Assembly (NCBI RefSeq): GCF_003704095.1
Contig: NW_020846537.1
Location: forward strand, 62,001 to 126,000
Direction of reading: 5' to 3'
From: Pocillopora damicornis
Taxonomy: Eukaryota
DNA length: 64,000 nt
The position numbers and the translations under genes are program-made. Positions within the stretch are counted from its first letter, which is position 1, and every line of letters begins with the position of its first letter. Of this stretch, positions 16,524 to 48,353 are shown piece by piece. The notes under the pieces were generated by a model. The model was not told where the DNA came from, did not search any database, and saw nothing but the letters and a program-made list of their open reading frames with translations.

Positions 16524-16529
16524 GAGCTG

Positions 16530-17110
16530 ACAACTAGGGAGGCTTTTAACCTTTAATGTTTTCATCAAGCGGCTGAGATAAAAAAATAATCCCTCAAATC
16601 AAGGTCTGTGTGTGAGTTACCTTTAAAAGTGCCTGTGAGGGGTCACATAACTTTTTCTTTGTAATCTCTTACATCTTCACCTAGAGTGTGATTTTTCGTT
16701 CGTTTTGCAACAATTAGTACATTGCAATTTTCTGTTTGGTTTTAAGTGAAATGCAAGTCAAAAAAAAAAAATTAAGATGCCCTATTCTTTGATCAATTTT
16801 TTAAGGGTGTGGCAAATCAATATTTTGTAGGCAGTTAAATGAAATTGAAGATATTGAAAATTAAGAGAAAGGAAAAATTTTTTAGCTGTCTATGCTGCAA
16901 GAATATCGTTGTAAATGATCATCTAACACAACCTAAGTGATAGAGTGTTGATCTTAGTTTGCCCGAGTTTGTAACGAAGAATTCGTTTATTTAGGAAATT
17001 GCTAGGTTATTGAATCCTTCAGAACCAAGTAGTAGGGGAGAATTATCAGCGTTTTTAAAATAGTAATGACTGTAGCTTTTAGAGTGCTTTATAGATTGTC
17101 AGCTTTTTCT
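16530..17110 (+). repeat. 3' flank of B, paralogous to 3' flank of C (about 26560-27120)
   Basis: Shared strings cacataactttttctttgtaatctctta and gtaaatgatcatctaacacaacctaag. Confidence 0.88.
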
Positions 17111-23090: not shown

Positions 23091-26000
23091 ATGGCAAATT
23101 CAACCAGAAATGAAGGTTCTTAAAGTTCTAATTTCATAACTTAAACGCTATCAGTTAAACTGACTATCCCCTCCAAGTCGTTACCTGTAATCGATATAGT
23201 ATTATGTGGAATCCTGAGAAGTCATTTCCACGGCTCCTAGCGAGCTTTTGTTGCTATCTGTCTTTTAAACCTTTTATGTGACAATTTTTTTTTCAATAAG
23301 ATAAATGCTTATTTTGCAGACACCTCCAATATCACACAATGGCGACAGGCTCGTGTCACTGAAAACCACATATTGTTAATATGCGATGACGTGGGTAGAT
23401 TCTGGATAGACCTAGGAACTATCTTGAAGTTGCCACCAGCTGAGGTTGTTAATATTGAGGACGAATTCAGATATAACCGTGACAGGGCGTGGAAAGTAAT
23501 GAAAAGGTGGCTACAAATGAAGGGAAGAGAAGCAACTGTGGGAATTCTCGCAGATGCTCTTGAGCAGATGAAGATGAGAAATGCCGTCGAAAAGCTGATT
23601 GGTATGTGATTTCTTATTTGAAGAGAGTACACTCAGTGCCGAGTCTATTTATTTCCTTAAAAAAATACCTTAAACCCATGTGGGAAAAGATTTTCAAATG
23701 ACCAACTTCTCAGTCATACCAGGGGGATTACATTTTCTAACGCAGTTCGCGACGAAGGCAAGTTTTGTTACATTTACAGTAGTTACACCAGGGAAGGAGA
23801 ACCTAATTAAACTCAAGCTCTACTTTATATAACAAAGATATCAACAACTGGACCATTAGCCGATGTAAAGCAATAGTTTAGCCAGTCAGCGTTTCACTGC
23901 ACAGTTTTTGCGAAGTTGAAGTACTACAGCGGGCCGGACCTTGAGGCCTGAATGTAAAGAAAACACTAGGACAAATTGAACTACTTTTATCAATAAAATG
24001 TAATTGCATACACGTAGAAGAAACTCGTCCAGAAATCTTATCTTAGCCCTGTGATAAGTTACGATTGTGAAAACCTTTTACTTTATCATTTAAGAAAGAG
24101 CCTATTGCGACCTCTCTACCTTTGGTTAACTTCTGCAATTTCTTTTCACTGTCTAATTAGAAAAAGTAAAAGTGGAGGCTGGATTGAACTCCGTTCGAGC
24201 TGCAAGCGGGAAGTTACGAAAGGACGTTGAACTTTTGAGGGTAGAAATACAGAACGGGCAACGGATGCAAGACGAAACACGGAAAGAATACGAAGAATTA
24301 AATTGCGAAATGCAAACAGCAACTGGAGAGGAAGGCCGAAAAAACATGGAAACTAGGATGCAACGCCTCGAGACAACAATTGAACGGCTGGAAAGGCAAG
24401 ATCCACTACAAAAATTGACTCGATTGCTAGAAATTTGCGGCAGGATTGACGAGGGTCTACGTGATGTACAGGAGAGCGTCAGAAAAGTCTCTGAAAACCA
24501 AAACGCGGCGGTTGGAAGGTCATTCGAAGCCGATAGGAATACATCAGATGAACCTATTGAGAGGCAACAAGAGGAAACTACATCGGAAGATACCATTCAG
24601 AGAGACACAATACGGAGGGATTCGCAGAACCAAAGAGAAAGTGAACTCATTATAAAACCTTTGCTTGACGGTAAGCTTATATTGCACAATTCATTGTCAG
24701 CCAAATTTGTAATGTTCTGTCCGAGAGACGTCGATGGAGTCAGATAAACTAAAACAAATTAATTTAAAATAAAAAAAATTCGTTTTAATTTCAAAATATA
24801 TCTCTCAAAATTCCTATGCACATGTTCAGAGTGCACGAAATACCGAAATACAACATTTTCTGAACACCCTTCCCAAGAGTTCAACTGAAATTGGACGATA
24901 AATGAATCAATTGGAGATACTGTGGTTCGATAATCCTTTTTCTTAGTTCATTTAAAATTTTAGCTCGACGTTCAATGGAATATATGCCAAGTATTTATAC
25001 AATCATTGATTGGGTTTAAAAACGTCGTCTTCATCTTTGGGTATCAAGTTATCCTTCTTTATTTTTTTTTTCCAGACTGTTCAACAAGTATACTTGTGAA
25101 CGTTATTTTCTTACAGATATTGATCGAATACCGGCAAAATTTCTCTTGTTTCGACCACGCAACTAAATTTATTCACCGCGCTATTAACATGTCTTCTACA
25201 TCACATACATTACAAGTGAGGATTTCTGTGTCGTCATGGTAACTGGGCCTACTGGCGTCGTGGTTTTACTTTCCACGAAAGTTTAATCTCTTCATTTTGA
25301 AATCAATACCGATGTCGAACTCAACTTTTTCAGGAGAATTTTTTATGTTCAGCAATCCCTGCAGTAGGTTTTCTAGACGATTTTCTTTGATTCAAATTTT
25401 TAGGAAATGAAATGGAACTCAATGATGTGGAAAAAGAAAGAGATTCACTGAAAACCAAATCTGGTCAACCAGACCAAACGAGCAAAAGTCAACTGGAGCG
25501 GAAAAGAAAGTTAAAAACAAATAATAAACAAGTTAAAGTGGAGAGAAACGAAGCCATCGAACCAAATAAAGTAATGGTGGAACAGATTCAAAAGCTTGAA
25601 GCGGAGAAAAAGGAGCTCGAAATGACGTTAAATGGTCAAACCGATCTTATGGCTGAAAATGAAAAGCTGTCGACTCAAATAGAAAGGCTGACAAAAGAAG
25701 CAAACAACTCTGAGTTTGAGTGCAAGCGGCTACAAGAGGAGCTCAAGACGTACATAAATTACCAAAGTCGTAAGTACACGAAAGAACTTTTTAAAGATAA
25801 TATTGACTTTCTGTCTTTAGCTAATCCGTTTCAGTCTAAAGTGGTACAGCCTTGCGCTATCTCTATCTACGTATCTGCCATATTAGTTTAGTTTTTCCTT
25901 AACCCCTTCCTTTACGTTAAGCACATTCTTCGCTGATGTTGAATTATATACATATGGGAAGGGAAGACAAGGCATTTTTTTCTTTTAACGTTATCTATCT

Positions 26001-26609
26001 TACTTTCGTTTCTACTTAGACGTTTTCTTACCAGCTGGAAAGGAATTTGCCGGCATATGCACTGGTGTCATCTGCTTCCTGAAACAAAGATTAAAAGATG
26101 CACCTTGCGCTGAATTGATTGCTTCCAGATCTTCCGATGGCCCTGGAGATGGGGCTGACGTATTAAACCATAAGACAGGCACCGTCAGTGCGACAGAAGA
26201 AAAGAAAAATTCGTGGTGGTCTATTGATCTGGGCTCAAGCCATCGGCTTGTGATTACACACTACGCTTTGAGGCACGGCAAAAGAGAAAAAGAGTCACTG
26301 CTAACCCAATGGCAGCTGAAGGGATCCAATGATGGGAAGCAATGGGAAAACATTGACACTATTCGCGACAAGAAGGATCCACAGTTCAAAGATCCTTCCC
26401 TATTTTGTACAGGCAAATGGTCTGTCAAAGGGGAAATAGGGCCTTTTCGTTATTTTCGAATTTTCCAGACAGGTGTTAATTCCTCTGGCAAATATGGAAT
26501 ATACCTATCTGGAATTGAGCTGTATGGAGTACTTCTAAACATGTGTGAACTAACAGAAACAGAGGCTTTATCCTATAAAGTTTTCATCAAGCAGCCGAAT
26601 GAAAAGTGA
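23091..26609 (+). CDS. Gene C: Death domain - coiled coil - SUN-like/galactose-binding domain protein (590 aa predicted)
   Basis: Exons 23091-23115 (MANSTRNE), 23320-23601 (DD), 24161-24670, 25404-25769, 26020-26609; total 1773 nt, open frame, all phase-1 GT-AG introns. Exons 3-5 and their introns closely match gene A. Confidence 0.87.
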
Positions 26610-29480: not shown

Positions 29481-32400
29481 CTAGATGTTTAGAAGTACCC
29501 CGAACAGTTCAATTCCGGACAAGTAGATTCCATATTTGTGAGAGGAATTTCTGCCTGTTTGGAAAATTCGAAAAAATCGGAAAGCTCCCATTTTGCCTTC
29601 AACTGACCAGGTGCCTGTATAATATGGATGAGGATCTCTGAAGCGTGGAGGATCTGCTCTTTTATAATTAGTTTCAAGTTTTTTCCAATTCATTCCGTCA
29701 TTGGATCCCTCCAGTTGCCAATGGGTAAGAACTGACTCTCCATCTCTTTTTCCGTGTCTTAAAGAGTAATGTGTGATTACAAGCCGATGGCTTGAGCCGA
29801 GATCAATGGACCACCATGAATCTTTCCTCTCCTCTGTTCCACTGGTAGTTCCTTTCTGATGGTCAAATATGTCACTTGCTTTACCTGGCCCATCGGAAGA
29901 TCTAGAAGCATGCAATTTTGATGTAACATCTCTCTTCAAATTGCAAATAACACCAGGGCAGTTTGTGGCAAATTCCTTTCCAGTTGGTAAGAAAACACCT
30001 AAAAGGAAGAAGAAAAGACAGCTAAATTACCGTCAAACTAACAAAAACTATCAAACTAATGCAGTCACCAATATTAAACAGTCGCTTAACCAGTATAAAT
30101 GATAATCGAANNNNNNNNNNNNNNNNNNNNNNNNNNNNNNNNNNNNNNNNNNNNNNNNNNNNNNNNNNNNNNNNNNNNNNNNNNNNNNNNNNNNNNNNNN
30201 NNNNNNNNNNTAAGCTCCTCGTGAAGCCTCTTGCACTCTAGCTCGCTGTTGTTCACTCTCTTGGAAAGCTGTTCAATTCTAGTCAACAGCATACCATTTT
30301 CAGCCTTGAGCCGTTCCTGTTCTTTTGCACCGGTTTGAACAAGTAACGCCTTTTCCAGTTCCTCCTTCTCGGCCAATAACTTTTCAATCCGAGCCATGAT
30401 TTTCTTGTTTTCTTCCATGACTTCAGTTTTCTTTTTCTCCATTTCAGCTTTCTTTTTGGAGAGTCTTTCTTTCTGCCTCTGCTGTTTTTCGTTGGTTTTC
30501 TTTAAGTTTCCAATTTCAAGCTCATTTTCTTTTATTTTCTTATCTTTTTCTTTTTTATCCTCGTCCCACTTCTTCTTATCTTCTTTGTGCTTGAGCTCGA
30601 GTTGGCTGATTTTGTTTTTAATTGTTTCTCTTTTTGTCTTAATGTCGTTAAGCTCCTTTTCCAAATCAGGACACCGCAAGCATGCTTGGCTTCCTATAAA
30701 AACACCAACACCCAGTGAAGATCAACGAGATATTAATGAGTCCTCGATTACATAAGTCTTGTTTACAGTAACGTGTGATCTGACCGGCTTCATCCAGATC
30801 GCTGGATGGTTGTATCTCCCCCTGTTTTCATTTATAGCCAGCTTGTGGGTTATGACCTATTTCAGCATCCATTTTATCCAATTAAATTCTCTAACTCGAC
30901 TATTTTCCAGACCTTTTGTGACACTGCCATTCGATAGAAAAGTATATATACCGAAGACATGTATTAGCATGTATTAACGCGGGGTCAAACATTAAAAAGT
31001 CTGCTCAAAGAAGCCACTGAAGTTAAAGTATGTGCAATTTTATCTCTTGCAGACTATGATAAAAGTCACAAAACAAATGAAGACGAACTTGAAAACTAAA
31101 ACAAAAATATCAAGCTTGTAGTGAAGGAAGCTGCGCAGTTCAAACTTACCTTCATACAAAAGTTGTATGGTCGCTCCTTCGTTCTTCTGCCTTTCCCCAT
31201 ATCTTTGTCCGGCGTCTTTCTGGCTTCGGTCAGCCATTCCACCCTTCTGTCTTGCACTTGAACGCCTCTCACTTGTTTCCTCCCATGCACTATTTTCGGG
31301 CTGTAATGATTTACCCGTGATTTCCTTCTGGTTTTCAGAGATCATTTTGATGTTTTCTTGCACAACCCGTAGACCCTCTTCCATCTGGTCGCAGATTTTT
31401 CCCAAGCGGGTCGTTTCTTGCATCAGAACCTCCTTATCGGCGGTTTTTTCAGTCGAAAGGTATGTTTCCAGCCTTTTAATTGTGGTTTCTAAGCCCTGGA
31501 CCCTTGTTTCTATATGTTGTCGCTCATCCTCACCCTTTTCTGTTAGCATTTCTTGTAGGCTTTTGGTAAATTCTCTGAGTTCTTTGACTGTTGTGTCGTG
31601 TTTCTGTTTCTCATTCTGTAGGCCCGTCCTCAAAAGGTCAACTTCCCTTCGCAATTTCGAACTTTGTACTCGCGCACAGTGTAACCCAGCCTCCACTTTC
31701 TCTGTCTCTATAAATATCAAGGTAAAAAGGTTGCATTTGATTAAACCCCCAAAATAAATGTATAGGCACCTTCTCAACAAATTTATCGCTAGTATTAAAA
31801 TGTTAAAGGTTTTTTGGGAAATAATTTTTTGTGAGGGCTCTGGACTAGAGAGGCTCTAATCGTAAACACGAACTGCAATGCTTTCGCCCCCCAAAAATTT
31901 TACATTGGCAAGCAAATGGACTGTAGAAGCGTTCGCTTTCAGTCAAAGCCTACCTTTATTGTATTCTTTTTAACCTTAAGTTTCTTGTATACTCAGATTA
32001 TCCTTTCTTAACGAAACAAAATATGTTCAAAACTGCCTGAAATGCAAGCTGCAGTAGGCTATGAAACCTGATGGTATCGCTAAGAGGCTATCTGTTAGAC
32101 TCTCCCTTCCAACTCAAGTTTTCATGAAGAACATGAATAGACATGTCAATGAATGAGTTCCCATAAAAACAAGAAATTACATACCAACGAGCCTTTGAGC
32201 GGCATTTCTCTTCCCTATTTTCTCCAGAGCATCTGTAAGATTTCCCAAAGTTGCTCCAGTCCCGTTTCTTTGTTTCCATCTGTCTAGCACTTGCCACGCC
32301 CTTTCTCGACATAAGGTGTAATCATTTTCAACATTACGAACCACAGCTGATGGGAGCCTCAACTGAGTACCCAGATCTCTCCAAGAAGCGCCCACGTCAT

Positions 32401-32844
32401 CACATATTAACATCATGTGGCTTGAAGTGACAGTTGCATGTCCATACTGTATACCACTAGAAGTGTCTGTGAAAATAAGTATCCAATTGAAATAAAAAAA
32501 ATATATGNNNNNNNNNNNNNNNNNNNNNNNNNNNNNNNNNNNNNNNNNNNNNNNNNNNNNNNNNNNNNNNNNNNNNNNNNNNNNNNNNNNNNNNNNNNNN
32601 NNNNNNNNNNNNNNNNNNNNNNNNNNNNNNNNNNNNNNNNNNNNNNNNNNNNNNNNNNNNNNNNNNNNNNNNNNNNNNNNNNNNNNNNNNNNNNNNNNNN
32701 NNNNNNNNNNNNNNNNNNNNNNNNNNNNNNNNNNNNNNNNNNNNNNNNNNNNNNNNNNNNNNNNNNNNNNNNNNNNNNNNNNNNNNNNNNNNNNNNNAAA
32801 TAAAAGGTTAGAGAACCTTCACTACTTGTAACTGATGTCTCCAT
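29481..32844 (-). CDS. Gene D: Death domain - coiled coil - SUN-like/galactose-binding domain protein (about 630 aa; end of exon 4 in N gap)
   Basis: Minus-strand exons 32844-32817 (METSVTSSE), 32466-32185 (DD), 31707-31150, 30693 to gap at 30210, 29998-29481. Same exon layout and phases as A-C. Confidence 0.87.
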
Positions 32845-35800
32845 CTTCCCAACAAGATCGCCTTTGAATTTAGCCAAGCTGCGATAATGTCCAAGCCTCT
32901 AACTTGCTTATAATTACCTAAAGCAAGCGAAAAAAATAAGGTAAACAACACATCCGACTTTACAGCTTACAGGGCATTAACAAAAAGTGTATGTAATTAC
33001 CACGGCGTGAACTCTGAGGTTGTTCAAGATAAATTGTCAGCAGGATCATTTTGAATGATCGTGGAGAAACTTTAAAACTTCATGTTAATGAAACATAACA
33101 ACGAAAATATAAGATATATGATAAAAAAAACCCTTAAAAACAATGGGGAAGTAGGAGGGATAATGGCGTAAGTCAGCTGAGGACATAAGGTTGTTACCGT
33201 CATGCCAACGAGGTCAGTTCCAAGGAAGCACGTGATTTTAGTGGATATCTCCATAAGAATATTAACGATGGTCAGTAAAAGAAAGGATGCGGATGAAGAC
33301 CTATATATGTGTATACTGGCTGTTATTAATTTTATGAATTTTGATTACAACTGAGAAATGGATAATCAGCGGAGTAGTTTAGCACGTCGGTAATGAAATG
33401 CGCTTAGCTTTAATGAAATTATAACGAACGAAAAGCACACTTCATCAGCACACAGACAAGAAAAAATTCGATTAGAATTTTATCACAGTATGACTTCTCA
33501 TAGACGATTCAGTGTGCATCTTGCCTCGTTACGTTTATAGTAAAGTAAGTGGTCGATTTACATCCTAAGAATAAGAGGACATAAAAGACACTGGCTGATG
33601 GAAACTTTGTATTTCAAATGCAGTTTCTGTGGTTTCCGAATTTCGTATGTAATTGGTCACTTGAAAATTAAATTCCTTCGCATAGGCTAGGCGATCATGC
33701 TCATGAAATTGCTTCAGAGGCAATATTTGCTTTGTCAAAAATCTAGCTTGTTCCAATCAATAAAGGACCTTTGGGTACAACTAGCAGCACTACTTGGATT
33801 AGGTCTTTCTTATAGCCACATATTTCGTCAAAGATTACTATACAGTTGCTATGTTTTAGCGTCTGTTTGTTAGTTTTTATTTTAATCGGGTTAACGACGC
33901 ACGTCAGAGAGAAATGGCAATAAAACAAACATTCACTTCATTCATTCTATATTTTAAAGCGTTGGCCGGCGTCAATTCGTAGAACTGGATAGCCGAGAAA
34001 CAAAATAGATGAAAATCGTGAATAATATTTCCCCAGGCCTCAAAAACTCATTTGATAGGAGTTTGGTGTTATTGTTTTATCTCAAGCGCCTATACGTTCC
34101 TGTCTTGTAACTCAAATGTTCTCAAGAGATAGCTATCAGCTTCTAAAATAAAATGGGAGATGTTGCGTAAACCTTCGTAGCTGAAGCATTTACCAGCACT
34201 GGCCGTCGACCAATTATCTTTGTAGCTTTGAAGAGCAGAGGTATTCGTTTTTATTCCCCATTATTTTGCTTTGATCGATTCAGGACACTACATCGACTGT
34301 CTCCGCACCATAACAACCGGTGGTCTATAAAAAACGCAACGAATCTAAGCTTTTCTATCAGTAGAGTTTCCTTTTAAAAAACTTGTTCTCTTATAGAGTT
34401 TGTCTCTCACCTCATATGGTACACTTCGAGCCCGTTATTCCATCTTAAAGTTGCGCTTTTTACCGCTGCCATTGGGAGTGCTGACAAAACTTACTTTTAC
34501 GATAACAAGGAAAATATTCGCTCTCTGAGCCATCTGATCTGCCTCATGCCCTCAGGTCACTACTCCGATCACTTTACACCTTTATCCGGCGACTAAATGG
34601 ATGAGTGAGCCCTAAAATTCCTAACCTTTTGAAGAGCCTCATGCATTTCTTTATTCTTTTTAAAGAGTCACGAATGACAGTCGACAGAATAGGTAAAGCT
34701 AATCATCAATAGAAAATCACTGTCGTGTATCACTGAGAATCATATGTTGCCTTTCTAACTCCTTCTTGAAGGACAGATCAAGACAAATTCCTTCCTTTGG
34801 CAACAAATGTTCTTTGTCAAGGAGACAGTTCACAAGACCGCTGAAGTAACTGAGTAATCCCCTCGGGATATAACCTGATGTAGTACGAATTTCTCCCAGT
34901 AACTCACAAAAGAGTGTACGGAATCCGGTGAGAAGAATATAGACATGAAAGGATTAAAGAAATTGAGTGGCATTTTGAAGAGTCAAAAATACTTGAGGGA
35001 AGACAGTCAGTTAATCTTTTTACGCGTACGCTCAATGTACTGCTTGATCAAAGTTCAAAATTCCACGGCAAGTTGGGGGCAACTTTTGGCAGTGTGGTAA
35101 GTCCCAAATCAGCACCTCAATAAAGTTAATATATCTGCAACCAAAACAACAGGTCAAAGGGGTATTCTAGTATTTAATTGGCTGGGAAAATGGCTGATAA
35201 GGACGCTGTAATTACACACCTGAGAGTTAACGTTAGATAATGAGGTGACCGTCTTATATGAAGATTTATGGCTTATTTTCGGCCTTTTTCTAACGAACAT
35301 AGTGCTATTGTTCCACTGATGAACGGAAGGTCTTATCAGTGATACGAAGTTTAATTCAAAGCTAGGTTGTTGCGAACAAATTGTTCCAGATTGGAACATT
35401 GAAGTTAAGCCGATTGCGCATTTCAGGAAGAATATTGACACGCGTCGGGTCTGATGCGAAGACGAAACTCCCTACACTTCATGTTGAAAGAACAAGTGCA
35501 AGGTAGGTTGTAAACTCGTCCATCTTAAGCGTGAATGACACTTTCAGTTTGTTAGGCCTTTGATACAAGGTCTGACGTTATACATCGTAAAATCTTGTGC
35601 AATGATACCTTTGACCTTTCAAAGGTGCCGCGAAATTCTTTTTGTACGAGACACGTCTCTTGTCATATGACTAAAAATGTTGTTTCATCCAGCTTATTCA
35701 CGTTACCCAAACATTTAATCTCATTAAGGCAAGTTTCAACAACTTTCTTTAAACTGAATTTAGGTGAACGATATGCAATTACTCTTCTCAGAGACAATTA

Positions 35801-36759
35801 TTCGAACGATATTCTGAACTCTTCCTCGTTAGCAGTGAATGACAATTGTTGGGGCAGAAATTCAGATGGGGGGGNNNNNNNNNNCTTTGCACGTTTCACG
35901 GGTTTAAAAAAATGATCATGAGGGAATCACGGCAATTAACATTAAATTTCTACGGTTCGTATAAAATAACATGATTTTAAGGACGTCAGATGTTCCGTAT
36001 TATAGGTTACTAGGCCTTTGGCTCCCTATCGACGGTTATTTCCAATCCTTTAATTTGGAAGTAATTTAGCTGAAAAAAATGAATGTTAAAACACTCAAGT
36101 GGTTTCTTTCACTGGCTTCACTTGTGGTTTCAATTTGTTCAATTGAAAGTTTTCTTGCGTTACCTGTTACTTCCTACTCCTTTTCTTCGTCAATTCTTTC
36201 ATCAAAAATATTTTTCATCGAGCTTTTCTTCCATTACATTGGGTAATCTATAATGTTGAGACCTCAAGAACACGAGAGATACTGAAGTTCAGCCAATTTG
36301 GGGTTGCTAGACACGAGATTTACGAATCGATCTCTTTTGCTGTAAGAATTCAAAATTGTGATAACGAGACAGTAACTTAAGTTAAGGATCTCTACAGAAA
36401 ATTATTGTTCGTTGACAAGGCTGCCTTAACAAAACCCCTTTTTAAAGCTCATATACAAACTCTGCAAACTCAATCTCAAAATGGACCAGCTTTAGTTAGC
36501 TAGGGACAAATGTCTGCTTCTCCTAATTAAATACCGTGACTGAGAGGAATGACGTCGAGACATTTTGGATAACTTTTTATGGCGTTAAGACGGGATGGAC
36601 CATTTATCATGATGCACAAATCATTGCGTAACTCCTTTAAAGCGTGCGGTAGAAAATCCATCTAAATTTCTTGAAAAACTTAATCGTAAGAGTAAAAAAA
36701 AAGAAGAAACATTTACCGAAGTATATAACATATTATTTTCAGAGAGAATCTGAAAGAAG

Positions 36760-39700
36760 ATGAATGACAGGCATCGGAAAATTTTGCACCAGTGTTGGTC
36801 GGAGTTCAGAAAAGACCTGGAACCAAAGAATCTATTACCTGAATTAACTTCTGTAGTGAACGTCACAGACGCACGAGAGGTGCTTGAAAAGAGCACAAGA
36901 AATGAGAGGGTAGACAAGCTGGTAACAGAAATACTTCCACGTAGAGGAAATAATGCTTTTAATGTTTTTGTGGAAGGACTGAAGAAGACACAGCCACACC
37001 TAGCTGTTACTTTGAAAAATGCAGGTAAATATGTTATGGCAATTCTTGATTCAACAGCTTTTTTTCGATTTTCTTTGCGATTGTAAATAGCAGTCTAATT
37101 CATTTTTTCTAATATTAATCAACATCGGGCAACATGGAGGCCAAAGGAGTACACTGCAGCAGCACATTAAATCTGTTAGGTTGCGCCTTAAAAGTCCTTT
37201 TCAACTATTTTCTTTGATATCGTAAAATAGGTTTTGATTGGTCATAGTCTGTGGTAAACAACTCTTTCAAAAATGAAAAGTAATCATTCGTCTCACGATG
37301 TGGTTACTTCGGCTGTGGATCACCACGTTTCGACTGATACTGTTAGTCATCTTCAGGCGAAGTACAGTACAATGCATCAACTTATGAAAAGACCGAAGGC
37401 GCAGCTAAGGAGAGTCCGGTTTCCGCTGTTATTGTTAACCTCTACATGAAGAGTTTTATAGAACAAGCAGTAACTTAATCAGTCACTTCATCAGTCACTT
37501 AGTCCGTGAGAGCATAGAATGCTTCCTACAGCATTTAAACCGCCAACAGCCTTGCATTCGCTTCACAATGGAGACGGAAAGCGGTCGTTTCATGCCCAAT
37601 TCACTTGATTCGTACCCAGTTTGATTTGGTTCGTACCCAAACCGCTGATCGATTCTTTCCCATCCTAACATACATTTATATAAAGTATATCACGCGCGAG
37701 CGCGGGAATAGACGTCAAGTGTTACGTACGACAAGTAAGTAGAGTCAAGCGAATAAGATACAAGAAAATTTTGTTTTGTACACTTGTGACTTCATAACAG
37801 ACACAATTAAGTTATTGCCAAGGGTAAGACAGGTGTGAAATTTTTAGTACAATGGCCTGGTGTTTATAGTTGTTAATTTCTTGACAATAACATCTAGTGC
37901 AAGTGTGTTTTTTTTCCGTCCCTTTGCTATCAAGGGTACTAACTTCGGAATTCTCATAGAAAACCAGGGGGAGAGCTGACTGTTGCAGGGCCGGAAAAAG
38001 CCGTTCGACTCCAGTGCACTTGTACGGTTTTGTTGCAAAAGGAAAAAAACATTGCTCGCTTTTGTTGTAAAAATGAGTGACAGCAGTAAACACAAATGAG
38101 AAAACATGTGACGTTTTTCGATGAATTCTGAGTTTCGTCCTTGTGTATATTTATTGAAGAATCAATTTTTGGTTTTCCCGCGCTTGCCAGTCTGTGGCAT
38201 TAATTAAAACAAGCTGCGCTTTGTCCGAACATCATCAAATATTTTCACATCCGGCCCTCACACTCAGTCAATAAGTACCTAAATATGCATCTGGTGGAAA
38301 TATTGCTTGCGTCTGTCCAATGACTTTCCGTTCCAGGTTCGGCGGTCGCCCTTCAGAAATGGACGTTACGTTAGCATAAGTTAATTAGTGCAGGTAATAT
38401 TGCTATTCACAATAGGAAACCGACCTTACTTTTATCATACTTAACATGGAAAACATACTTTATTAGTTTGGGTACGAAACGGCTCAACTGACTGGGTACT
38501 AAACGACTTAACTGTATACAAAAAGGCTGGGTACCAGAAGACCGGTAACCGTCACCGTTGCCGATTCCTAGAAAAAAGCTGCTATTATTCTGTTGATAAG
38601 TAGGTAAAGCCTCCAAATGCGAAGTCGGAAGGTCTAGGGAATAGATATATTTCTTAGTCTCCTTTAAATGGTTCCATCTTCCCTTATAAGACACGTAATT
38701 ATGAGCATGAGTTGACTGCAGTAATTATTAACCTGTGTTACTTATCTCATTTCCAGAAATAAAAATGATGGAGGAAGAGCTTAAGAATGAAAGAGCAAGT
38801 AGTGCGATGAGAAGTAACCAAGTTGATGAAGCAACAGAAGCTTTGGAAAAAGAGAGAAAAGAGCACGAGGAAACACAAAGGAGACTCGAAGAAATAACTC
38901 GTCAAAACGAAGCTCTGATCGAGAATTACAGAAAAGGTGTGGCGTTTAAGACTGAAATTGAAAGTTGAAAGAAGAGCTATCATACCAACACCTGTTAACG
39001 GAAAACACTTTTGGTAGTTCAAAGGAAACATGTTTTTCTTAGTCCACGCTCGTAAGAAAGATAATATCTTTCCTTAGAAAAACCATATTGTCAGGAATGG
39101 GTAATTTGATTCATGTCTAAGAGGTGTACAGTTTGTTTCTCTTGCAGAAAGAGACGTTATAGAGAAAGAGCTGATCAACGAAAAAGAAGGATGCGTGAAG
39201 TTAAAGAAACAAGTTCTTGAAATGAAAGAAGCTTTTGAGAAAAAGCAGCAAGAGAATAAAGAAAAGCAGAAAGTAATCGAAGAACTTGGGAGACAACAAG
39301 AGAAACTAGATGCTGAAAGCAAAGCAGAAATTAAGAAGCTGTCAGGTAAAGAAGACACTTTTTCTAATACTGGATGTGTACCCTGAATAGAAGTTTTAGT
39401 TTATCGAATCGAAAAGAGATTGCAATCGCTGCATTTTATTTCAAATTATCAACGAAACTTGTGATATAGAGAAGCTAAATATTACAGAAAAATGGGCATA
39501 ACATTTGACTCGGTCTCACAAAGCCTGAAAGAGGCTCTCATCACCCCCGAGCACATGCAGGTAACTATACGAACAGTCAGGAAGGAATGATTCTCGTAAG
39601 TTATTTGCTGCAATCCGATTGCAGAAAAGACTGAAGTTATTTCTTCAATTTCAGCTTGCCTGTGAGGATCATTTTAACCGCAACTTAGGTCACTGTATGA

Positions 39701-41524
39701 TTTAATTCATTAAAATTGTGATGAGATTCCTCTGCGGGAACGCGGAATTCACTGAAAGATGCCTAGCTTCCAACATGTGGCTTCGTTGCTCAGTTGGTAG
39801 TTGCGCCCAACCAGAATCCGGGAGGAGGCGTGGGTTCGAATCCTATTAAGGCTTAAATTTGTCAGGCCTCTATTATGTAATTACTTAAATTGCAGTTAGC
39901 CTGCGACAATCGTTCAGATTTACTTCGAGAGATCTCGTTTTTCCTCCGTTTCGTCCACCAATTATGAATTTGCTTGTTTTTAAAGAGAAGAATAACTCGT
40001 ATCAGGAAAAAATTAAAGGCTTGAACTCTACGCTCAAAAATCTTAAAAAGGAATCAGATAAGATGGAGAAAGAAAAAAAGGAACAGAAGTCAAAGCTTAA
40101 TGCGAAAGAGCAAGAATTAGCCAAGCTGAAAGACCTGTTAAAGAAAGAAGAATCGGAAAATAAAAAAGTTTCTGAAGAAGTTGAAAAACTCAAAGAAGAT
40201 AATGACCAGTTGAGGAAAGATTTGGATGCCGAAAAGAAGAAGCTGGAAGAAACAGAGGAGGAATTGCGGGCAGAGACTAAAGCTAAGGGAGATGCCTTGA
40301 ATGAACTGGAGAAATTGAGAGAAGGGTGCGGACGTAAGTAACCTGTTTTTAGTAAGCGCACGTTCATTGAAGGGCTACGGATCTTCGCAAACACCGTGTC
40401 TAAATTTAATCTATTTTTTTTAGGGACCTCTTCATTAGCATTTTAAATCCAAGAATTAATAAATATCTAACTTTTCCTTATAATATCAATGGATTATTCC
40501 GCAAATATTGATGGTCGAAATTTTTAGAGTTAGGCTATTCTAAAGAGTTTCAAGTCGCCTAAGACCGCGAGATCGAAGGGTGTGAGGTTCGAATTCCAGT
40601 CCAGAGTGGAACTAAGATAGTTGTTTCTTTGTTCCAAGCTCGTGAAAAATGTAAAAGATTTCAGGTTCTTCATCATTTAACTTTTATTTTTTCTACAATG
40701 TCATTACTTCCATCACTGGGTGACTAACCTACTTCTTTGACCATAGGAGCAGCAAAAAAATGGATGGATTTCTTGCTCCACCTATCTGAAGTATTTGAAG
40801 AATAATCTATCGGTTGATTGATTGATCTGTCAATGCTATCGGCTTGAGAAGCCACAGCAAGCGTAGAATGCTTTTACCTCAGAACAACCTGACAACAAAG
40901 GAGTTTATCTTACTTTCTGGTGTCCACTCGGGGAACATTTTTTCACCTAATTTTGTTTTTATTTATGCAGGTGTTTTTAACTATAAAAAAGATTTTGACC
41001 GATGTGGAGTTATTTATGCGATGGGAATGAATTTCGGAGCTAATCGGCGTTGGGTAAATCCCAGCAAGAGTGGTGTATCCACAAGAGTAAGTGCCTCAAG
41101 ATCATCTGACGAAGTAGGCTCAGCAACTGATCTGCTTGAACGTTGTCATAAACAGGGGAAGATAAGCGGTACCAAAAACGTGAAGGAATCATGGTGGTGT
41201 GTTGCCTTGAGCGAGAAATACTCATTGTATCTCACACATTATACTCTAAGACACGGTCTGGACAACGGTGGTTCATTCCTCCGTAATTGGCAGCTCGAAG
41301 GGTCGTTTGACGGGTCTACCTGGGAAGTGTTAAAAAAACACCATAATGATAGCAAGCTATGTGAACCCTCTTCGTATACCGCTACCTGGCCGATTGAAGG
41401 AGAAGTTGGAGCTTATAGGTTTTTTCGAGTTGTTCAGAAAGGAAAGAATTCCTCGAACGAATATGGTATTTACCTATCTGGGATTGAACTGTACGGTGTA
41501 CTTATGAAAGGTTACAATAGTTAA
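36760..41524 (+). CDS. Gene E: CARD - coiled coil - HECTD1-type SUN-like/galactose-binding domain protein (514 aa predicted)
   Basis: Exons 36760-37024 (CARD: MNDRHRKIL...DLEP..LL..L...DKLVTEILPRRGNNAFNVFVEGL), 38757-38936, 39148-39345, 39986-40333 (K/E-rich coiled coil), 40971-41524 (DFDRCGVIYAMGMN..WVNP..HYTLRHG..LRNWQLEGSFDG.TW..L..H.ND..L.EP..TATW..YRFFR..Q.GKNSS..LSGIELYG); total 1545 nt, all phase 1. Confidence 0.85.
37290..37475 (+). mobile_element. Degenerate Penelope-like retroelement fragment in intron 1 of gene E
   Basis: 37365-37475 translates QYNASTYEKTEGAAKESPVSAVIVNLYMKSFIEQAVT, matching the PLE-type RT segment FQYNG..YEQ..GAAMGSP.S.V.ANLYME.FE..A. It is preceded by acgtttcgactgatactgttagtcatcttcagg, which resembles a PLE terminus. 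Confidence 0.7.
39765..39925 (+). mobile_element. tRNA-derived SINE-like repeat in intron 3 of gene E
   Basis: A-box-like ttgctcagttggtag and B-box ggttcgaatcc at tRNA-like spacing, no intact cloverleaf, followed by a non-tRNA tail. Confidence 0.65.
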
Positions 41525-44357
41525 CAAGTATGCCAGTAATTCAAAAAGGTTGAAGACCCTAAGGATTCGGAAAGCTTTGGGCATTTTCAATTTTTTGATA
41601 TTACTTTTTTCATTGGAAAGTCACCTCCATTCAAGGAACATCTTAGTCTCGTTTAAAAAAGTTTAGACGTTGTTTAACAAAACCGTGTCCTAAAAAATCC
41701 TCGATTTAACGGAGCCTTTTATTCGTACATTTATTTTTGTGAACAGCGTCAAGAGGGCCGAAAAAGGGCATTAAATCAGTTAATTAACACTCCTCTAGAG
41801 AGAGCCTGAGACCCACTGATTGCGTAAAAGTGTGATTTAGGTTAGACCTCGGTCCCCTTAAAAACGAACTTAAACTTGGAATAAGTAATTTGCAAACTTA
41901 CGCGGCAAGAGACAAAGGGATTCTGTCACAAAAGCTGATTCCTGTCAGTTTATACAAGAATCTGTATTTCTCCCCTAGATTTCCGGGGAAACGCAGGTGC
42001 CTACCTGCCTATGTGCTCGCTGTGCTCTTGTCCATTCGACATAAAAAATCGAAGCAAATTGCAGTATAATAGTCTACCAAGATTAGAAATTTTAGGGTTC
42101 ACTCAACCATTTAGTTGCCAGATAAAGGTGGAAAGTGATAGGGGCATGAGGATAATCATGTGGATAAGAAAGGGAATATTTTCTCTATTAATGTAAAAGT
42201 AAGTTACGTTTTCATAACTCCTTATGGTGAGGGAAAAGGTGGGTCTCTAAGGTAAAATAACTAATTCAAGGCGACTTAATGGACGAGTGGGCCCTAAATT
42301 TCTTAACCTTTGAAGAATATGATGTATTTTTGATGTCAGTCAAAAGAGTACTAAGAACTGTCATCTAGAGAAAATCATGGTCGTCTTGAGAATCAGAAGT
42401 TGTCTTCTTCGTTCGTTCTTGAAGGACTGATGGAGACTTCTTGTCTCTTTTACAACAAATTTTCCTTGTCCAAGAGACATTTCACGAGACTGGTAAAGTA
42501 ACCGAACAATCCACTCGGGATATAGCCTATTATAACATGAAATTCCATAACATGAAAATGTAAGCAATTTGGTAAGAGATTAGTGGCATTTAGAAGAAAG
42601 AATAATTTTTAACGCTTCAGCACAATTCGTCGCCTAATTCCAAGGCAAGTTGCGGGAAACTTTTTATCTTGTGACAACATCTTAATCAGTATGCCAATAA
42701 GAAAATTGCAGCCATAGCAACAGGTTGCTAAGGCAATCAAGTGTTTGATTGGTCGGTAAAATCGGCAGATTACGTCACTGCAATCAAACACACTTGAAGG
42801 TAACGCTGTATAAAAACTATTTCTGAATATCTCTGATGGAGAATCGTGGTGAGTCATTTGCCATGTTCTGATGAAATTGAGTATTACTATTTCACTGATT
42901 GACAGAAGGTCCTCAACTTAACTTTAAGTTATGTTGCTTTAGAAATATTACGGAACGTGAAAAAAGTGTCACAGATTCCAGCACTGATAATACAGCTGAC
43001 TGCGCATCTGAGGTAGAAAAGTTTGCACTCGTCTGACTTGCTTTGTGGTGGAATATTCTTCGACTTTTGGCTGAAGGAATCAGTACGAGGTAGGTTTTCA
43101 ACCGATCCACCTTGAACTCGTGTGCTTTTTTCACTTTGTTGAACCTCTGACAATAAATCCAACGTAAACGTTATGCTCAACTGCTACGAGAAGAATATAT
43201 TTCTTCTAAGCCTTGTGTTCTAGTATCATTAAGTTTGACCTCTTGCACAGCTACAAGATGCGTTTTGTACAGAGTCCATCTCCTAACATTTGACCAAACT
43301 GCCATTTCATCCCGCTAATTCACGCCAGTTAAATATTTAATCACTTCATGGCGAGTTTTAACAACCTTGTTTACACTTATCAAAGATATACAATATACAA
43401 TAACTCTTGTCAGTGGGACTATTTGGACGATATTCGCTAATATAAACACTGCATATTTAGTAAATGGTTCACTTAGCATCGCACTAACACACAACACGTG
43501 CAAAGTACTTTAGGTTGTACTTAGTGAAGAGCTTGAAGTAAAATTAACAACGCCTTAGTAAAATAGGATCTAAATCTGCACCATAACAACGTTCTTCTGA
43601 GCGCAACTAACAATTTGAGAGTGTTCAGAAAGATTAGCGGATATCACTGTTGCGTAGAATAACACTCTTTTTCTCACAAAACCGAGAGGCTTGTTATTCT
43701 TTATGGCCTGAAGACTGTCTCAGAAGAAAGGTGACATTTTATTTACCAAAACTTGCCGACTTCTAAAATCGAGAGTACAAGTATTAATTAATGAGCTGAA
43801 TAATCTTTTCTTTACACTAAGGTGTACGGGAGTTAACAATACCTCTTTGAATTTGACCACCTGAACAGAACATCTATTGTTAAGATATTCAATTGAGAGG
43901 CAAGAAAAGTTATTCATTTGCAAATTTTACGGTCATCTTTATGCAGAGTCCCTTCCGGCCATAGAAACTTGCAGAATAGTTGAAAATACCTTTTTTCAAT
44001 GAAAACTCAAAGCTTCTTTGAAGTGATAATCGAGTAAAAACTGCTTGATCGCCATATATTTCTACTAGTTTTTGCGAATCCATGTCAAAAAAATTTGAAA
44101 CGAAGATCCTATGTTTTAATGACATGGCTTATGTTATCTACAGTGGCATGTCATAGCACATGAAAGCGGAAGAAATTCGTGTGAGAGAAGGACAACGAAA
44201 ACCAAACCTAATGGGTCTATTATCAATTGTTGAAAGTTAAAATGCATTTAAACCCGCAGGTTTCTCTTGGCAAGGCTAGTGTTGTTGGCAAGTTGCACTT
44301 TGCAGAAAAATTTAACGACGCTTCTGAGATAGAGACTGGTGTTGAACCCAAGACAAC

Positions 44358-47300
44358 ATGAATGAAAGGCATCGAGACATCTTGCGTCGCCACTGGTCGG
44401 CGCTCAGGAGAGACTTGGAACCAGTTAAGCTTCTACCTTATCTGGTAAACGTATTGGACGTCACAGACGAACAGGAAGTGAAGGTGAAGGCCACACGAGA
44501 GGACAGAACAGACAAACTGTTAGAGATCCTACCCAGGAGAGGACCAGCTGCTTTTGATGAGTTTGTGACAGCATTACAAGAAATCCAGCCATTTTTAGCT
44601 ACTCCTTTGGTCAAAGAAGCTGGTAAGTCACCTAGTAATGGAAGTAATGACATTGTAGAAGAAATACTTGGGGAGGAGAGGGGTGGGGGGTGATGTAGAC
44701 TGGCGAAGGAGTGGTGGGTGAGCCTCGAAAGGTCATGATAAGTTTACGTCAAAAAAATTTTTTTTAAATCTATATCGACAATAGGCATGCGGATTTTATT
44801 TGTGGAACCGGAATTTCCAACTGACTTTTTTCTCGATCGATCCTCATACTTATTCCTTAAAAACAGGAATGGGAAATTAATTGAAAAATAAAGACATAAA
44901 TATGTAAAATTTTCCCGGTTGGAAACACGCAGTGATTTTAAGGCCTTACTTGTGTGGAATCATTCTTATCTATAATTGCTTAACTCTTTAATCATTCATA
45001 GCAAGGCCCAGTAAAGTCTTACAGGATTAATTAACAAACAAGCAAAATACATAACAAATTCTATTTATAAGATGAGGCTATTTTTGCGGCTGAAGTGATG
45101 TTTCATCCGGTACCTGAGGTTAATTGCCGACATGATACTCCCCACTGATTACCAAAATAAAGCATCTCAGTTGAATAGAGCTGGGCAACAAATGATTGAA
45201 CAATTTGGGCCCATCGTCCGAATATAAAAATATTCAGTGGAACTCAGACCCAGATCACTCCAAATTTTTTTTGCACCAATGAACGTTAAGAAATGGAGGG
45301 GAACCGTTATAATTGAACAAAAAAAATAGAATGATTACAAAATAAAAACACCGAAGGGTACCAAAAATGTTCCTAAATGGCTTTCTCTTTTCTAGAAATG
45401 GAGGAAATAAAGACAGAGCTTAACCGCGCAAGAACGCACAGTGCAAGGTTACGTGAAGAAGTTCGTCTGATGAGGACAGGTTTAGAAAACGAGCAACAAA
45501 AGCATAGGAAAACGCAGAAAGAACTCAAGGAGCTAAAGAGCATACACGAAACGCTCATGGTGAGAAGTAACGACGACCAGAGGATTTTGCAAGCACAAGT
45601 TAAAGAATTTGAGAATAAAATCAAAACCATGGAGGAAGAATTGTCCGCTAAAGAGGTTTTCGTTGAGGAAACAGATCGTTTAAGAAAAATGTGTGATAAG
45701 CTAGACGATGATTTGAGAAACCTTAGGGAAAACTTTGAAAAGACCTCCGAGGAAAATAAAGAACTTGCAAAAAAACTGTCAGGCTACCAAAATAATACTT
45801 TAAATCAAAGCAACTCTCCTGATATGACCAGTCTTATGTCGATGCAAGTGGGGCTCAAAATCTACAACGGGCACGAGCCAAACTTTCATCTTATTGGAAA
45901 TACAGACGAGGAGATGAAGCTCGCATTTCGCAAAAACAGAGCCATCTCAACAGAACTGCTAGATGAGGCAAGGAAAGACTTGGCTAATGTAACAAAAGAA
46001 CACGAAGATTTGAAACAAAAATATGAAGAGCTTGAGAGACAACTCGAGGACACCCTCGAAAGTTTGGAAAGGAAAAGAAGCGCCAGTTTTCACGACCGAG
46101 CGACGTCTCCCAGAGAAATGAAGCAGGATGACTCTGAAGGTAAGTTAGTAAAGTATATCTGTCATTGCGGATTATATTTTATTTTAATAATTGTGAACAA
46201 ACGCGGCAGGTTTTTTACGCCAGCTTTTTTTTTAGTCTTTCGAGTCGTTGTTATCACCATATTCAGTCTTTTGCGCTTCGTGCTCGTTACGAATCGCTCG
46301 TAGCTCGTGCTCGTCACGGGTCGCTCGTTGTTCTTCCTCGTCACGGGTCGCTCGCAGTTCGTGCTCGTCACAGGTCGCTCGTCGTTCGTGCTCGTCACAA
46401 GTCGCTCGTCGTTCGTGCTCGTCACGAGTCGCTCGTAGCTCGTGCTCGTCTTTTAGGGTTTACGAAACCGCTTGAGGGGAGGAAAGGGGAACATGAATTT
46501 ACTGGTATTTGATTCACAATAAGTTTTAAACAGAACTGGCGTCTTAAGGTGTTTCCCTAACTACAGAGGTTTATATCCACTCGTTTTGCACAAGTGCTTA
46601 TAATCTACTTCTTTCCGAATGGCTTTGGAGGAGGACTATGCATCATCACCACTAACGAGACTGTCTGGCATAAGTATCATAACTGTGTAGATTGGATCGG
46701 AATATACAGAGTCCAGTCAAGCAGGGTAGAGACCATCAATTATTATTTTCGGTTTGCTCATTTATTTTTACTTGTTTTCTTTTTGCGTAGAGGATAATCA
46801 ATGTTCGCGTTGTGATGCATTAGAAGAAGAATGTACCTTATTACGAACTGAGAGAGACTTCATCAAAGGAAAGAAAGTTAAGTTTGAAGAAGAAATTAAG
46901 ACATTAAACAAAGATATTGAAGATCTTCGCTCTGAGCACACAAAGGAGAAAAAGACTCTACAAAGGGAAATACAAGTTATGAGAGAAGAACATGAAAACT
47001 TGACGAGGGACTTTGAGAAAGAGTTACAAAAGATGTTGTGTGAAGTGAACGAACAACAAATTGCTGAGATGAAAATGTTGCAAGGGAAAAATGAAGAACT
47101 AACTGAGCTTTTGAAAAAACAAAAGTCAGAGGTTCAAAAGATCTCCACCCAACTGAAAAAAGAAAAATCAAATTTTGATAAAATCGAAGATGAGTTTGTC
47201 AAGGTGAAGAAAAACTTAGCTCGCGAGAAAAAGAAGCTTAAAGAGGCCAAGGAAGGCATGGCGGCAGAGGCTAAAGGAAAGACAGATGCCCTGAGAGAAC

Positions 47301-48353
47301 TGGCGAAATTGAAGGTTGAACTTGGTGAGAAAGAAAAACAAAAGGAAGAAGACTTTGCACGACTTCGTAAGGACTTCTTGGATCGTTGTCATTGTGAAGC
47401 GTTGAGGGAAGAAATCGCAAGACTAAGGAGCATGCCAGGACGTAAGTATGGTAACTGCATTTTATTAGTGTGCATTGTGATTGGTCTAGAAACTCACGCC
47501 ACCTCATCGACCGATCAAATTAAACAAAATCCAATCGCAGCTTGGTTACTCGCGTTTTCCCGCGCTTAAAGCCCTTGGAAGAGCTTGGTCACTCGCGTTT
47601 TCCCGCGTTAAAAGCCGTAGGAAGAGCAATCCTCAGAGCGGCAAAATATATCGCTCTAGAACAAGAATAATCTGACTGATTACCGATCGATTGATGTACC
47701 AATAAACTAATCCCGATGAATTAGAATCTCATCTGTCTTGTAGAGTTTTACGAGAAGAATATTCACATTCATGATATTTTCTGTCCTTTTTTAACCTAGG
47801 TGTTTTGAACTACAGGAAGGATTTTGATAGACATGGAGTCATCTATGCATTAGGAACAAATTTTGGTACCTCATCATGGGTGAATCCTAGTAGCTCAAAC
47901 GCTTTTCCGACGAGAATAATCGCCACACGATCTTCTGACGAACAAGGCTCGGCAAGTGATCTGCTAGATATTCGGAGAGGCGGATCATTAAGCGGCACCA
48001 AAGACGAGGAAAAATCGTGGTGGTGTGTTGACTTGAGCGAGAAATATGCTCTTTATCTCACACATTACACTCTCAGACATGGGCGAGACAACGGTATGTC
48101 AATCATTCGTAATTGGCGGCTTGAAGGATCGTTGGACGGACGTACTTGGAAACTGTTAAAGAAACACGAGAATGATCGCGGGCTTAAGGAGCCTTACCCA
48201 TATTACACCGCAACCTGGTGTGTCGATGGGGAGTTCGGAGCTTTTCGGTATTTCAGGATTTTTCAGACGAGCAAGAACTCTTCAGGGAGACATAGCATTT
48301 ATTTATCTGGTATTGAGCTGTATGGAGTCCTTATTGAACGACTCGACAGTTAA
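44358..48353 (+). CDS. Gene F: CARD - long coiled coil - HECTD1-type SUN-like/galactose-binding domain protein (737 aa predicted)
   Basis: Exons 44358-44622 (CARD: LLEILPRRGPAAFDEFVTALQE, caspase-2/RAIDD-like), 45396-46139, 46791-47441, 47800-48353; total 2214 nt, open frame, all phase-1 GT-AG introns. Confidence 0.9.
46276..46450. repeat. 27-bp CpG-rich minisatellite, about 6.5 copies, in intron 2 of gene F
   Basis: Unit gttcgtgctcgtcac(g/a)(g/a)gtcgctcgt(c/a), read directly from the sequence. Confidence 0.95.

Follow-up and report, generated by a model that had tools for sequence, protein, structure and literature searches.

In pyrin (MEFV/TRIM20), a PYD head is followed by a coiled coil and a C-terminal B30.2/SPRY beta-sandwich, an arrangement that couples oligomeric sensing to homotypic death-fold signalling. 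In stony corals, symbiosis, bleaching and disease all draw on innate immunity and cell-death signalling, and large, poorly annotated expansions of death-fold genes are present in the genomes of these animals. Here we describe a tandem family of such genes in Pocillopora damicornis, found in a stretch of 64,000 nucleotides referred to throughout as the window (positions 62,001 to 126,000 of contig NW_020846537.1, assembly GCF_003704095.1; the contig is called C3172 below, so that the window is C3172:62001-126000). Two of its members, designated D and F, carry different signalling domains, a death domain (DD) in D and a CARD in F, on a homologous coiled-coil stalk and C-terminal tail. Positions are those of the window unless another contig is named.

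The closest published descriptions come from two directions. CARD-CC homologues have been reported in cnidarians through work on CARD-CC proteins, Bcl10 and paracaspases (Staal et al. 2018, PMC5978004), where a discoidin tail is not mentioned, and expansions of death-like and TRADD-N domains with variable architectures have been described in marine invertebrates (Kaur et al. 2021, PMC8195603). Neither paper describes a death-fold/coiled-coil/discoidin architecture, and full-text searches of the literature found no description of a family of this kind. The explanation that we favour, with a probability of roughly 0.7, is that the family comprises cytosolic, adaptor-like proteins specific to stony corals, each built from a death-fold head, a stalk made of the coiled-coil modules CC1 and CC2, and a discoidin/CBM32-like tail; that D and F are paralogues; and that in one sublineage of robust corals the CARD head was replaced by a DD through an exchange of the 5′ end, after which the DD form multiplied locally.

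Six paralogues were mapped in the window by tblastn with exon peptides (searches were run exon by exon, and no spliced protein was used as query): A, B, C, E and F on the plus strand and D on the minus strand. Every one of them combines a death-fold exon with exons for coiled coil and, at the C-terminus, a conserved domain exon of about 150-180 residues, and Pfam assigns the heads of A to D to the DD and those of E and F to the CARD. For gene D the exon chain can be read from transcripts, since RNA contigs from four runs (four studies) were placed on 29400-35399 and three of these runs (X1, X10 and X15) show the same order of exons, given here from the 5′ side of the gene together with the nearby gaps in the assembly:

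35875..35884, no strand: gap of 10 N between the divergent genes D and E (D 5′ exons versus E CARD exon; from its position relative to the mapped exons)
from about 34411, minus strand: further 5′ piece of D (RNA joint 34324 to 34411, runs X1 and X10)
34173..34324, minus strand: 5′ untranslated region (5′UTR) exon of D, with short upstream open reading frames only (RNA contig joints)
32817..32917, minus strand: start exon of D, with ATG at 32844, 9 codons (28 nucleotides coding) and a phase-1 donor (joint 32466 to 32817 in three RNA runs)
32508..32797, no strand: assembly gap of 290 N inside the D intron between start exon and DD exon (RNA contigs skip 32467-32816, GT..AG)
32185..32466, minus strand: DD exon of D, 282 nucleotides, phase 1-1 (Pfam Death and RNA joints on both sides)
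31150..31707, minus strand: CC1 coiled-coil exon of D, 558 nucleotides, phase 1-1 (RNA joints and homology to F CC1)
30211..30693, minus strand: CC2 coiled-coil exon of D (joint 29998 to 30211 with 24 letters between, three runs)
29481..29998, minus strand: C-terminal discoidin/CBM32-like exon of D, including the stop codon (tblastn, RNA contigs, Pfam F5/8C on relatives)

The minus-strand joints, each of them GT..AG, are 34324/34411, 34173/32917, 32817/32466, 32185/31707 and 31150/30693, followed by 30211 to 29998. The joint between start exon and 5′UTR (32915/32917 to 34171/34173) is seen in runs X1 and X10, and a single RNA contig of 1523 nucleotides covers the tail exon, CC2 and CC1 and continues into the DD exon. 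Together the coding exons of D sum to 631 codons (630 residues and the stop), with all junctions in phase 1. A gap at 30111-30210 covers the last 24 nucleotides of the CC2 exon, and only the letter count of that piece (24 nucleotides) entered the frame arithmetic; the 290-N and 10-N gaps touch no compared exon, and the former holds no coding exon in the dominant D transcripts. For the exons that are compared below, the RNA contigs rule out gap artefacts as the source of the D/F comparison. A hidden CARD exon in D is also ruled out, D and E being divergent and the transcripts skipping the gap; tblastn found no CARD-like open reading frame between 32467 and 36700 and none upstream of A-C. Low-depth RNA contigs at 30785-31178 and 30666-31088 cover the intron between CC1 and CC2 of D and represent unspliced or intron-retaining molecules, and one RNA run shows a 23-nucleotide insertion polymorphism behind 31088.

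The two CARD genes, all on the plus strand, are laid out as follows:

44358..44622, plus strand: CARD exon of F, from ATG to phase-1 donor, 265 nucleotides (Pfam CARD; 94% identical to Stylophora P0182)
45396..46139, plus strand: CC1 coiled-coil exon of F, 744 nucleotides, phase 1-1 (homology to D CC1; Stylophora model)
46791..47450, plus strand: CC2 coiled-coil exon of F, phase 1-1, opening with a CxxC motif (sequence and tblastn)
47800..48353, plus strand: C-terminal discoidin/CBM32-like exon of F, including the stop codon (structure model with a predicted local distance difference test score, pLDDT, of 92.5; Foldseek)
36760..37024, plus strand: CARD exon of E, from ATG to phase-1 donor, 265 nucleotides (Pfam CARD; 57% identical to F CARD)
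38757..41524, plus strand: coiled-coil exons of E (first acceptor 38757, phase 1) and tail exon (from 40971), mapped by tblastn of Stylophora P0184, some internal borders being approximate

Taken together, the four coding exons of F make up 741 codons, and here too all junctions are phase 1. The exons of F are 71-94% identical to Stylophora pistillata XP_022785889/90, and the Stylophora model of the F orthologue, at 737 residues, agrees with F, including a CARD-CC1 join at the predicted codon. The C-x2-C motif (often C-x2-C-x7-C) that opens CC2 of F at 46791-46830 is kept in B and in the Oculina, Acropora and Montipora relatives, and in short forms from Acropora and Montipora the CARD is joined straight to this motif, with no CC1. 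Two database entries need care: in XP_022785890 ("myosin-9-like isoform X2", P0182) the F orthologue runs on into COMM-domain exons, which correspond to the gene that follows downstream (window 52495-55362), which is probably read-through or a merged annotation, and GenBank PFX28457 (1489 amino acids) merges the E and F orthologues.

The comparison that carries the argument is that of the two CC1 exons. The sequence-only reading of this locus had aligned them as the third exon of D and the second of F, and the alignment holds: the two are 39% identical over 148 residues, with an E-value of 8e-29 in composition-adjusted BLASTP. That reading had also recognised that such a similarity might fail to stand out from shuffled heptad controls, which did not occur. 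The Smith-Waterman score of D CC1 against F CC1 is 254, and this value was reached by 0 of 2000 shuffles of each of three kinds, namely residue shuffles (mean 48, maximum 83), heptad-block shuffles (mean 77, maximum 137) and within-register heptad shuffles (mean 65, maximum 107); the other coiled-coil exons of the D and F genes score 36-101 against D or F CC1. With the score far above those of heptad-preserving shuffles, the similarity of the two stalks is one of homology, not heptad composition. Their upstream borders agree as well. The donors of the DD exon (32185/32184) and of the CARD exon (44622/44623) are both phase 1, the CC1 acceptors of D and F lie at the same aligned codon, a split Glu, and this junction codon between head and stalk is common to D, F, the Stylophora F orthologue and the DD form of Oculina.

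The identity of the heads is equally clear. The DD exon of D matches Pfam PF00531 with 56.6 bits (cut-off 22.6, E-value 2.9e-15), and its nearest solved death domains are those of RIPK1, THOC1 and FADD (E-values of about 4e-7 to 2e-6). The CARDs of F and E match PF00619 with 55.6 and 36.9 bits (cut-off 23.9; E-values 5.5e-15 and 3.7e-9, respectively), and the nearest solved structure for F is RAIDD (E-value 2.9e-6), followed by CARD11 (1.5e-3), Apaf-1, CARD8 and CARD9 (0.24). The view that D opens with a DD exon and F with a CARD exon, each ending at a phase-1 donor, thus stands as far as the domains and donors are concerned, but it needs amendment at the 5′ end of D, where the DD is the first domain although its exon is preceded by a coding start exon and at least two 5′UTR exons.

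According to Patthy's phase rule, a shuffled module is a symmetric exon whose neighbouring introns have one and the same phase both in the donor and in the recipient gene. The DD exon is symmetric (phase 1-1), related DD exons on two other contigs, C1211 and C1274, share its borders, and the junctions of CC1, CC2 and all others in D and F are phase 1. With all coding borders in phase 1, modules can be inserted, lost or exchanged without a break of frame. The difference in heads fits an exon-shuffling exchange of the signalling module of the kind known from NLR head swaps. In proposing just this, the sequence-only reading was right that CC1, CC2 and tail are homologous and that only a one-exon, phase-1 head differs; it took the exchanged unit too narrowly, since a start exon and a 5′ end arrived too. 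The closest DD exon outside the array is on C1274 (44% identity to the DD of D, E-value 3e-20):

C1274 (locus L010), 12118-12390 and 17978-18229, minus strand: DD and CARD exons, with the DD 5.6 kb downstream of a CARD exon that has a phase-1 donor

This exon shares with the DD exon of D the acceptor position, a split Asp codon and the lead-in residues, and C1274 could be a donor-type gene for it. Related CARD exons likewise occur on other contigs, and the presence of related phase-1 DD and CARD exons elsewhere points to a genome-wide pool of phase-1 death-fold exons.

The shared part of the two genes extends to the tail, which is 50% identical between D and F and 65% identical between D and A or C. 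Relatives of the tail are abundant (3890 in a representative library), many of them BTB-BACK proteins of the BTBD9 type. Among 33 relatives that were scanned, PF00754 was found in 27 and BACK in 17, and the tail exons of the window themselves fall just under the Pfam cut-off (22.8-23.3 bits versus 27.8-28.2). No convincing sequence match of the tail to a solved structure was found, the best having an E-value of 0.0017. The AlphaFold model of the F tail (pLDDT 92.5, predicted template modelling score 0.89) is matched by Foldseek to CBM32, to an F-type lectin (lectinolysin) and to the discoidin domain of muskelin, with E-values of 1e-8 to 1e-6. On this model the tail is predicted to be an F5/8 type C, or discoidin/CBM32-like, beta-sandwich of the BTBD9/HECTD1 type. 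The "sensor" role given to it earlier is a reasonable guess from the lectin-like predicted fold. In Acropora palmata, protein P0179 (LOC141882226) carries the tail on a ZU5 and "GT4-conflict" glycosyltransferase protein, 65% identical to that of the CARD form P0155 (the A. palmata query), which makes the tail itself a shuffled module in conflict-type genes of corals.

Both heads are found beyond Pocillopora. Proteins with CARD, coiled coil and tail are annotated in Acropora palmata, A. millepora, A. digitifera, A. muricata and A. cervicornis, and also in Montipora capricornis, M. foliosa, Stylophora pistillata and Oculina patagonica, under public names such as "golgin-like", "myosin-9-like", "hecd-1-like" and "uncharacterized". 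The dichotomy of heads recurs in Oculina patagonica, which has both DD and CARD forms. Its DD form, LOC144661514 (808 and 820 residues; P0187 and P0229), consists of a DD, two copies of CC1 that are 40-46% identical to F CC1, more coiled coil and the tail, and to judge from locus numbering the DD and CARD genes of this species are presumably close neighbours. A search with the Stylophora CC1 recovers DD and CARD proteins of Oculina, including a cluster with Montipora proteins (P0172). As CC1 occurs together with a CARD in this cluster, the combination of CARD and CC1 is older than the split between complex and robust corals. With the Oculina DD and CC1 region as query, matches came from Oculina only; the search was confined to an allowed length window and does not show absence elsewhere.

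A tree of the tail, rooted on BTBD9-like domains, separates two clades. Clade II contains CARD forms only, namely E, F, the Stylophora orthologues and the Acropora and Montipora proteins. Clade I (support 99/98) contains the Oculina DD form, two Oculina CARD forms and all of the Pocillopora DD forms, the last of which group together (83/99). On this tree a single change of head would suffice. Since CARDs lie on both sides of its root, the CARD is likelier to be ancestral, and the DD is probably its replacement in a robust-coral sublineage. The CC1 tree, with three groups only, is compatible with this; it splits the fast-evolving DD copies of Pocillopora, among which D has the shortest branch, from F, the Stylophora orthologue and the Oculina DD copies. 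Of the separate domain trees that had been called for, those of the tail and of CC1 do not conflict, with one change of head needed by the tail and nothing in CC1 against it, though clade I is internally unresolved. A contig from the Tara metagenomes (L018, species unassigned) that bears a clade-I-like tail was uninformative, with no DD or CARD within 10 kb.

The history that we propose would begin with a CARD encoded by the first coding exon, the arrangement still seen in E and F and in relatives from Acropora, Montipora and Stylophora. On one branch of the robust corals, which gave rise to Pocillopora A-D with the copies upstream of the window and to LOC144661514 of Oculina, the 5′ end would have been replaced. 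Its substitute would consist of a new start exon together with a DD exon of phase 1-1, the latter drawn from the genome-wide pool of related DD exons. The incoming DD would have joined the stalk exactly at the former junction of CARD and CC1, and the DD form would then have multiplied locally. In the resulting proteins, the tail might bind a ligand (glycan or protein), the coiled coil might oligomerise and the head might nucleate homotypic assemblies of CARDs or DDs. If ligand, oligomer and nucleation are read in this way, the swap would redirect one and the same input chassis to a different downstream pathway.

Several points weigh against this account. The exon chain of F comes from sequence and the Stylophora model, RNA contigs having been placed on D only. 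The swap involved more than one exon, as the new start exon and 5′UTR also came, so that "exon shuffling" may in fact have been replacement of the 5′ end by unequal recombination or gene fusion. The direction from CARD to DD is drawn from few labelled sequences, with the poor resolution of clade I adding to the difficulty, and the DD forms were sampled in robust corals, by searches bounded by a length window and a word index. Everything said about function is read from domain types. Finally, one locus on another contig has exons of both related types in tandem:

C1211, 170004-171286 (locus L009:4004-5286), plus strand: CARD exon (ATG to phase-1 donor) and DD exon (exon search)

Here a distance of 700 bp separates the CARD exon from a DD exon downstream of it on that strand, whose acceptor and donor are both phase 1, so that the two would splice in frame.

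This arrangement is what might be expected if the ancestor had possessed a CARD exon, a phase 1-1 DD exon and the stalk, and if the present heads had arisen by differential loss of exons or by alternative 5′ ends, with no import at all. Skipping a 1-1 DD exon preserves the frame, and such a history gains from the C1211 sequences themselves, the CARD being 46-54% identical to the clade-I CARD of Oculina and the DD 43% identical to the Oculina DD form, as well as from C1274, where the DD exon with the greatest similarity to that of D is preceded by a CARD exon at a distance of 5.6 kb. We nevertheless consider it unlikely, although it is the alternative that survives best. Both heads were seen together in no member of the family, whether in the D RNA contigs, in Oculina isoforms X1 and X2, in the Stylophora models or in more than 20 CARD forms, and tblastn detected neither a leftover DD within the first intron of E and F nor a leftover CARD ahead of the DD exons in A-D (all E-values above 0.03). 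Moreover, the C1211 and C1274 loci are without the tail domain, and downstream exons were not found (at C1211, none within about 15 kb), which means that these loci may belong to another family. A second, stop-containing copy of the CARD lies at C1211:190071-190331. The C1211 locus was also considered as a CRADD orthologue, which is unsupported, its DD being nearest to THOC1 and FADD and its CARD matching RAIDD weakly.

With replacement of the 5′ end retained as the preferred history of D, a separate question is what D and F might do together. The sequence-only reading had proposed that heteromers of the DD and CARD paralogues, held together by their common stalk, could connect the two pathways in a PIDDosome-like way, a role comparable to that of RAIDD. 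The homology of the two CC1 modules (39% identity) and the closeness of the F CARD to that of RAIDD (E-value 2.9e-6) speak for this, and a complex prediction for D CC1 (residues 1-135) with F CC1 (1-130) gave a weak pass, with a score of 0.40 against 0.00 for the best of 3 controls, agreement of the runs in at least 96% of contacts and partner pLDDT of at least 81. How much such a pass is worth can be judged from the calibration of the test. Of 78 solved complexes 51 attained the mark, as did 2 of 108 mismatched pairs, but passes at or below 0.60 comprised only 5 of the 78 solved complexes as opposed to all 4 passing mismatches. By the test's own account, a pass of this size is, without prior likelihood, more often wrong than right; the controls, furthermore, are unrelated proteins that form no coiled coil, and near relatives of a genuine partner also pass. 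The prediction that had been suggested as a check was thus obtained, and a pass of this size is not counted as evidence of binding. With the stalks 39% identical, each might equally well oligomerise selectively with its own kind, and D and F belong to different tail clades. A bridging adaptor of the RAIDD kind would have CARD and DD in one polypeptide, or be part of a demonstrated complex, and neither was found; with no protein or transcript of the family carrying both domains, the PIDDosome-like part of the proposal falls away. Co-assembly of this sort is, in our view, quite improbable. The same low standing applies to a broader version, in which the proteins would be cytosolic pattern or danger sensors of corals, similar to pyrin and TRIM proteins, with a lectin-like tail that senses, a coiled coil that oligomerises and a head exon that sets the output, and in which DD and CARD paralogues would co-assemble via CC1 so that one stimulus fires both FADD/RIPK-like and caspase/Bcl10-like pathways; this, too, we regard as a long shot.

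That the likeness of the stalks might come merely from coiled-coil composition, heptad periodicity or mis-modelled genes around gaps is scarcely credible: coiled coils do often yield false likeness and three gaps lie in or near gene D, but the score exceeds every heptad-block (137) and register (107) shuffle and every other coiled-coil exon (at most 101), the composition-adjusted E-value remains 8e-29, the tails of D and F are homologous as well, orthologous modules occur in Stylophora, Oculina and Montipora, and RNA contigs confirm the exon chain of D across the gaps.

The remaining DD genes of the window lie at lower positions than D:

1823..26543, plus strand: paralogues A, B and C, all DD forms (tblastn maps)
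about 1823, 12144 and 23322, plus strand: starts of the DD exons of A, B and C (tblastn)
5609-6061, 16065-16520 and 26091-26543, plus strand: tails of A, B and C (tblastn)

Gene B (12144-16520) looks degenerate or fast-evolving; its CC1 is detectable in part only, and its tail, 53% identical to that of D, is without the THY-x-LRHG motif that is otherwise conserved. The array comprises at least 10 genes and extends upstream of the window on C3172. In a search of the 234-Mb genome (4393 contigs, E-value at most 1e-8), all 11 matches to the tail domain were on this contig, and across 126 kb of it there are only two CARD exons, those of E and F, and many DD exons. On both strands of C3172:1-62000, DD exons were found at about 5.7, 7.1, 7.6, 29.8, 57.2 and 61.8 kb, CC1 exons at 47.5, 57.9 and 59.7 kb, and tails at 16.3, 23.1 and 50.8 kb. 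This region is heavily gapped, and several copies are consequently incomplete or unassignable.

The principle illustrated here is already known, since head swaps on an immune chassis occur in NLRs and other expansions. The value of the locus is rather that the swap is unusually legible, with two heads on the same stalk and tail and the change traceable to a single codon and intron phase; transcripts support it, and the dichotomy is also present in a second coral family. In addition, an identity is given to proteins that annotation lists as "myosin-9-like", "golgin-like", "hecd-1-like" or "uncharacterized", and the fixed chassis is suited to head-swap constructs with which the choice between CARD and DD output could be probed in coral cells.

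Set against described systems, the family resembles each of several in part. It is like the CARD-CC proteins (CARD9 and CARD10/11/14 of the CBM signalosome) in that the CARD exon of F splices directly to the long coiled coil CC1, which would form oligomers and display the CARD as a seed for nucleation, and in the weak match of that CARD to CARD11; it differs in that RAIDD, ahead of CARD11 and CARD9, is the best match of the F CARD, in that the tail is discoidin-like where CARD-CC proteins have a MAGUK module or the short CARD9 tail, and in having paralogues with a DD. Pyrin and the TRIM proteins offer the general plan of head, coiled coil and beta-sandwich tail, but the coral family has no B-box or RING, a discoidin/CBM32 tail in place of SPRY, a CARD or DD in place of PYD, and no sequence relationship. 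RAIDD/CRADD and the PIDDosome share with it the use of CARD and DD modules, the RAIDD-like CARD of F and, at C1211, tandem CARD and DD exons in frame; in contrast, no coral family protein holds both domains, the DD of D is nearest to RIPK1, THOC1 and FADD and not to RAIDD or PIDD, and the DD of C1211 is not nearest to RAIDD either. The tail shares motifs with the BTB-BACK-F5/8C proteins, in line with BTBD9, HECTD1 and muskelin and with the name "hecd-1-like" that NCBI gives to some relatives, yet in this family its partners are a death-fold head and a coiled coil and not BTB-BACK or HECT ubiquitin-ligase modules. The head swaps of the NLR type show a parallel pattern, with one chassis, alternative death-fold heads and tandem, fast-evolving paralogues in a sessile marine animal; here, however, the chassis is a coiled coil with a discoidin-like domain, without NACHT/LRR or TRADD-N, and the swap can be pinned to a single phase-1 junction.

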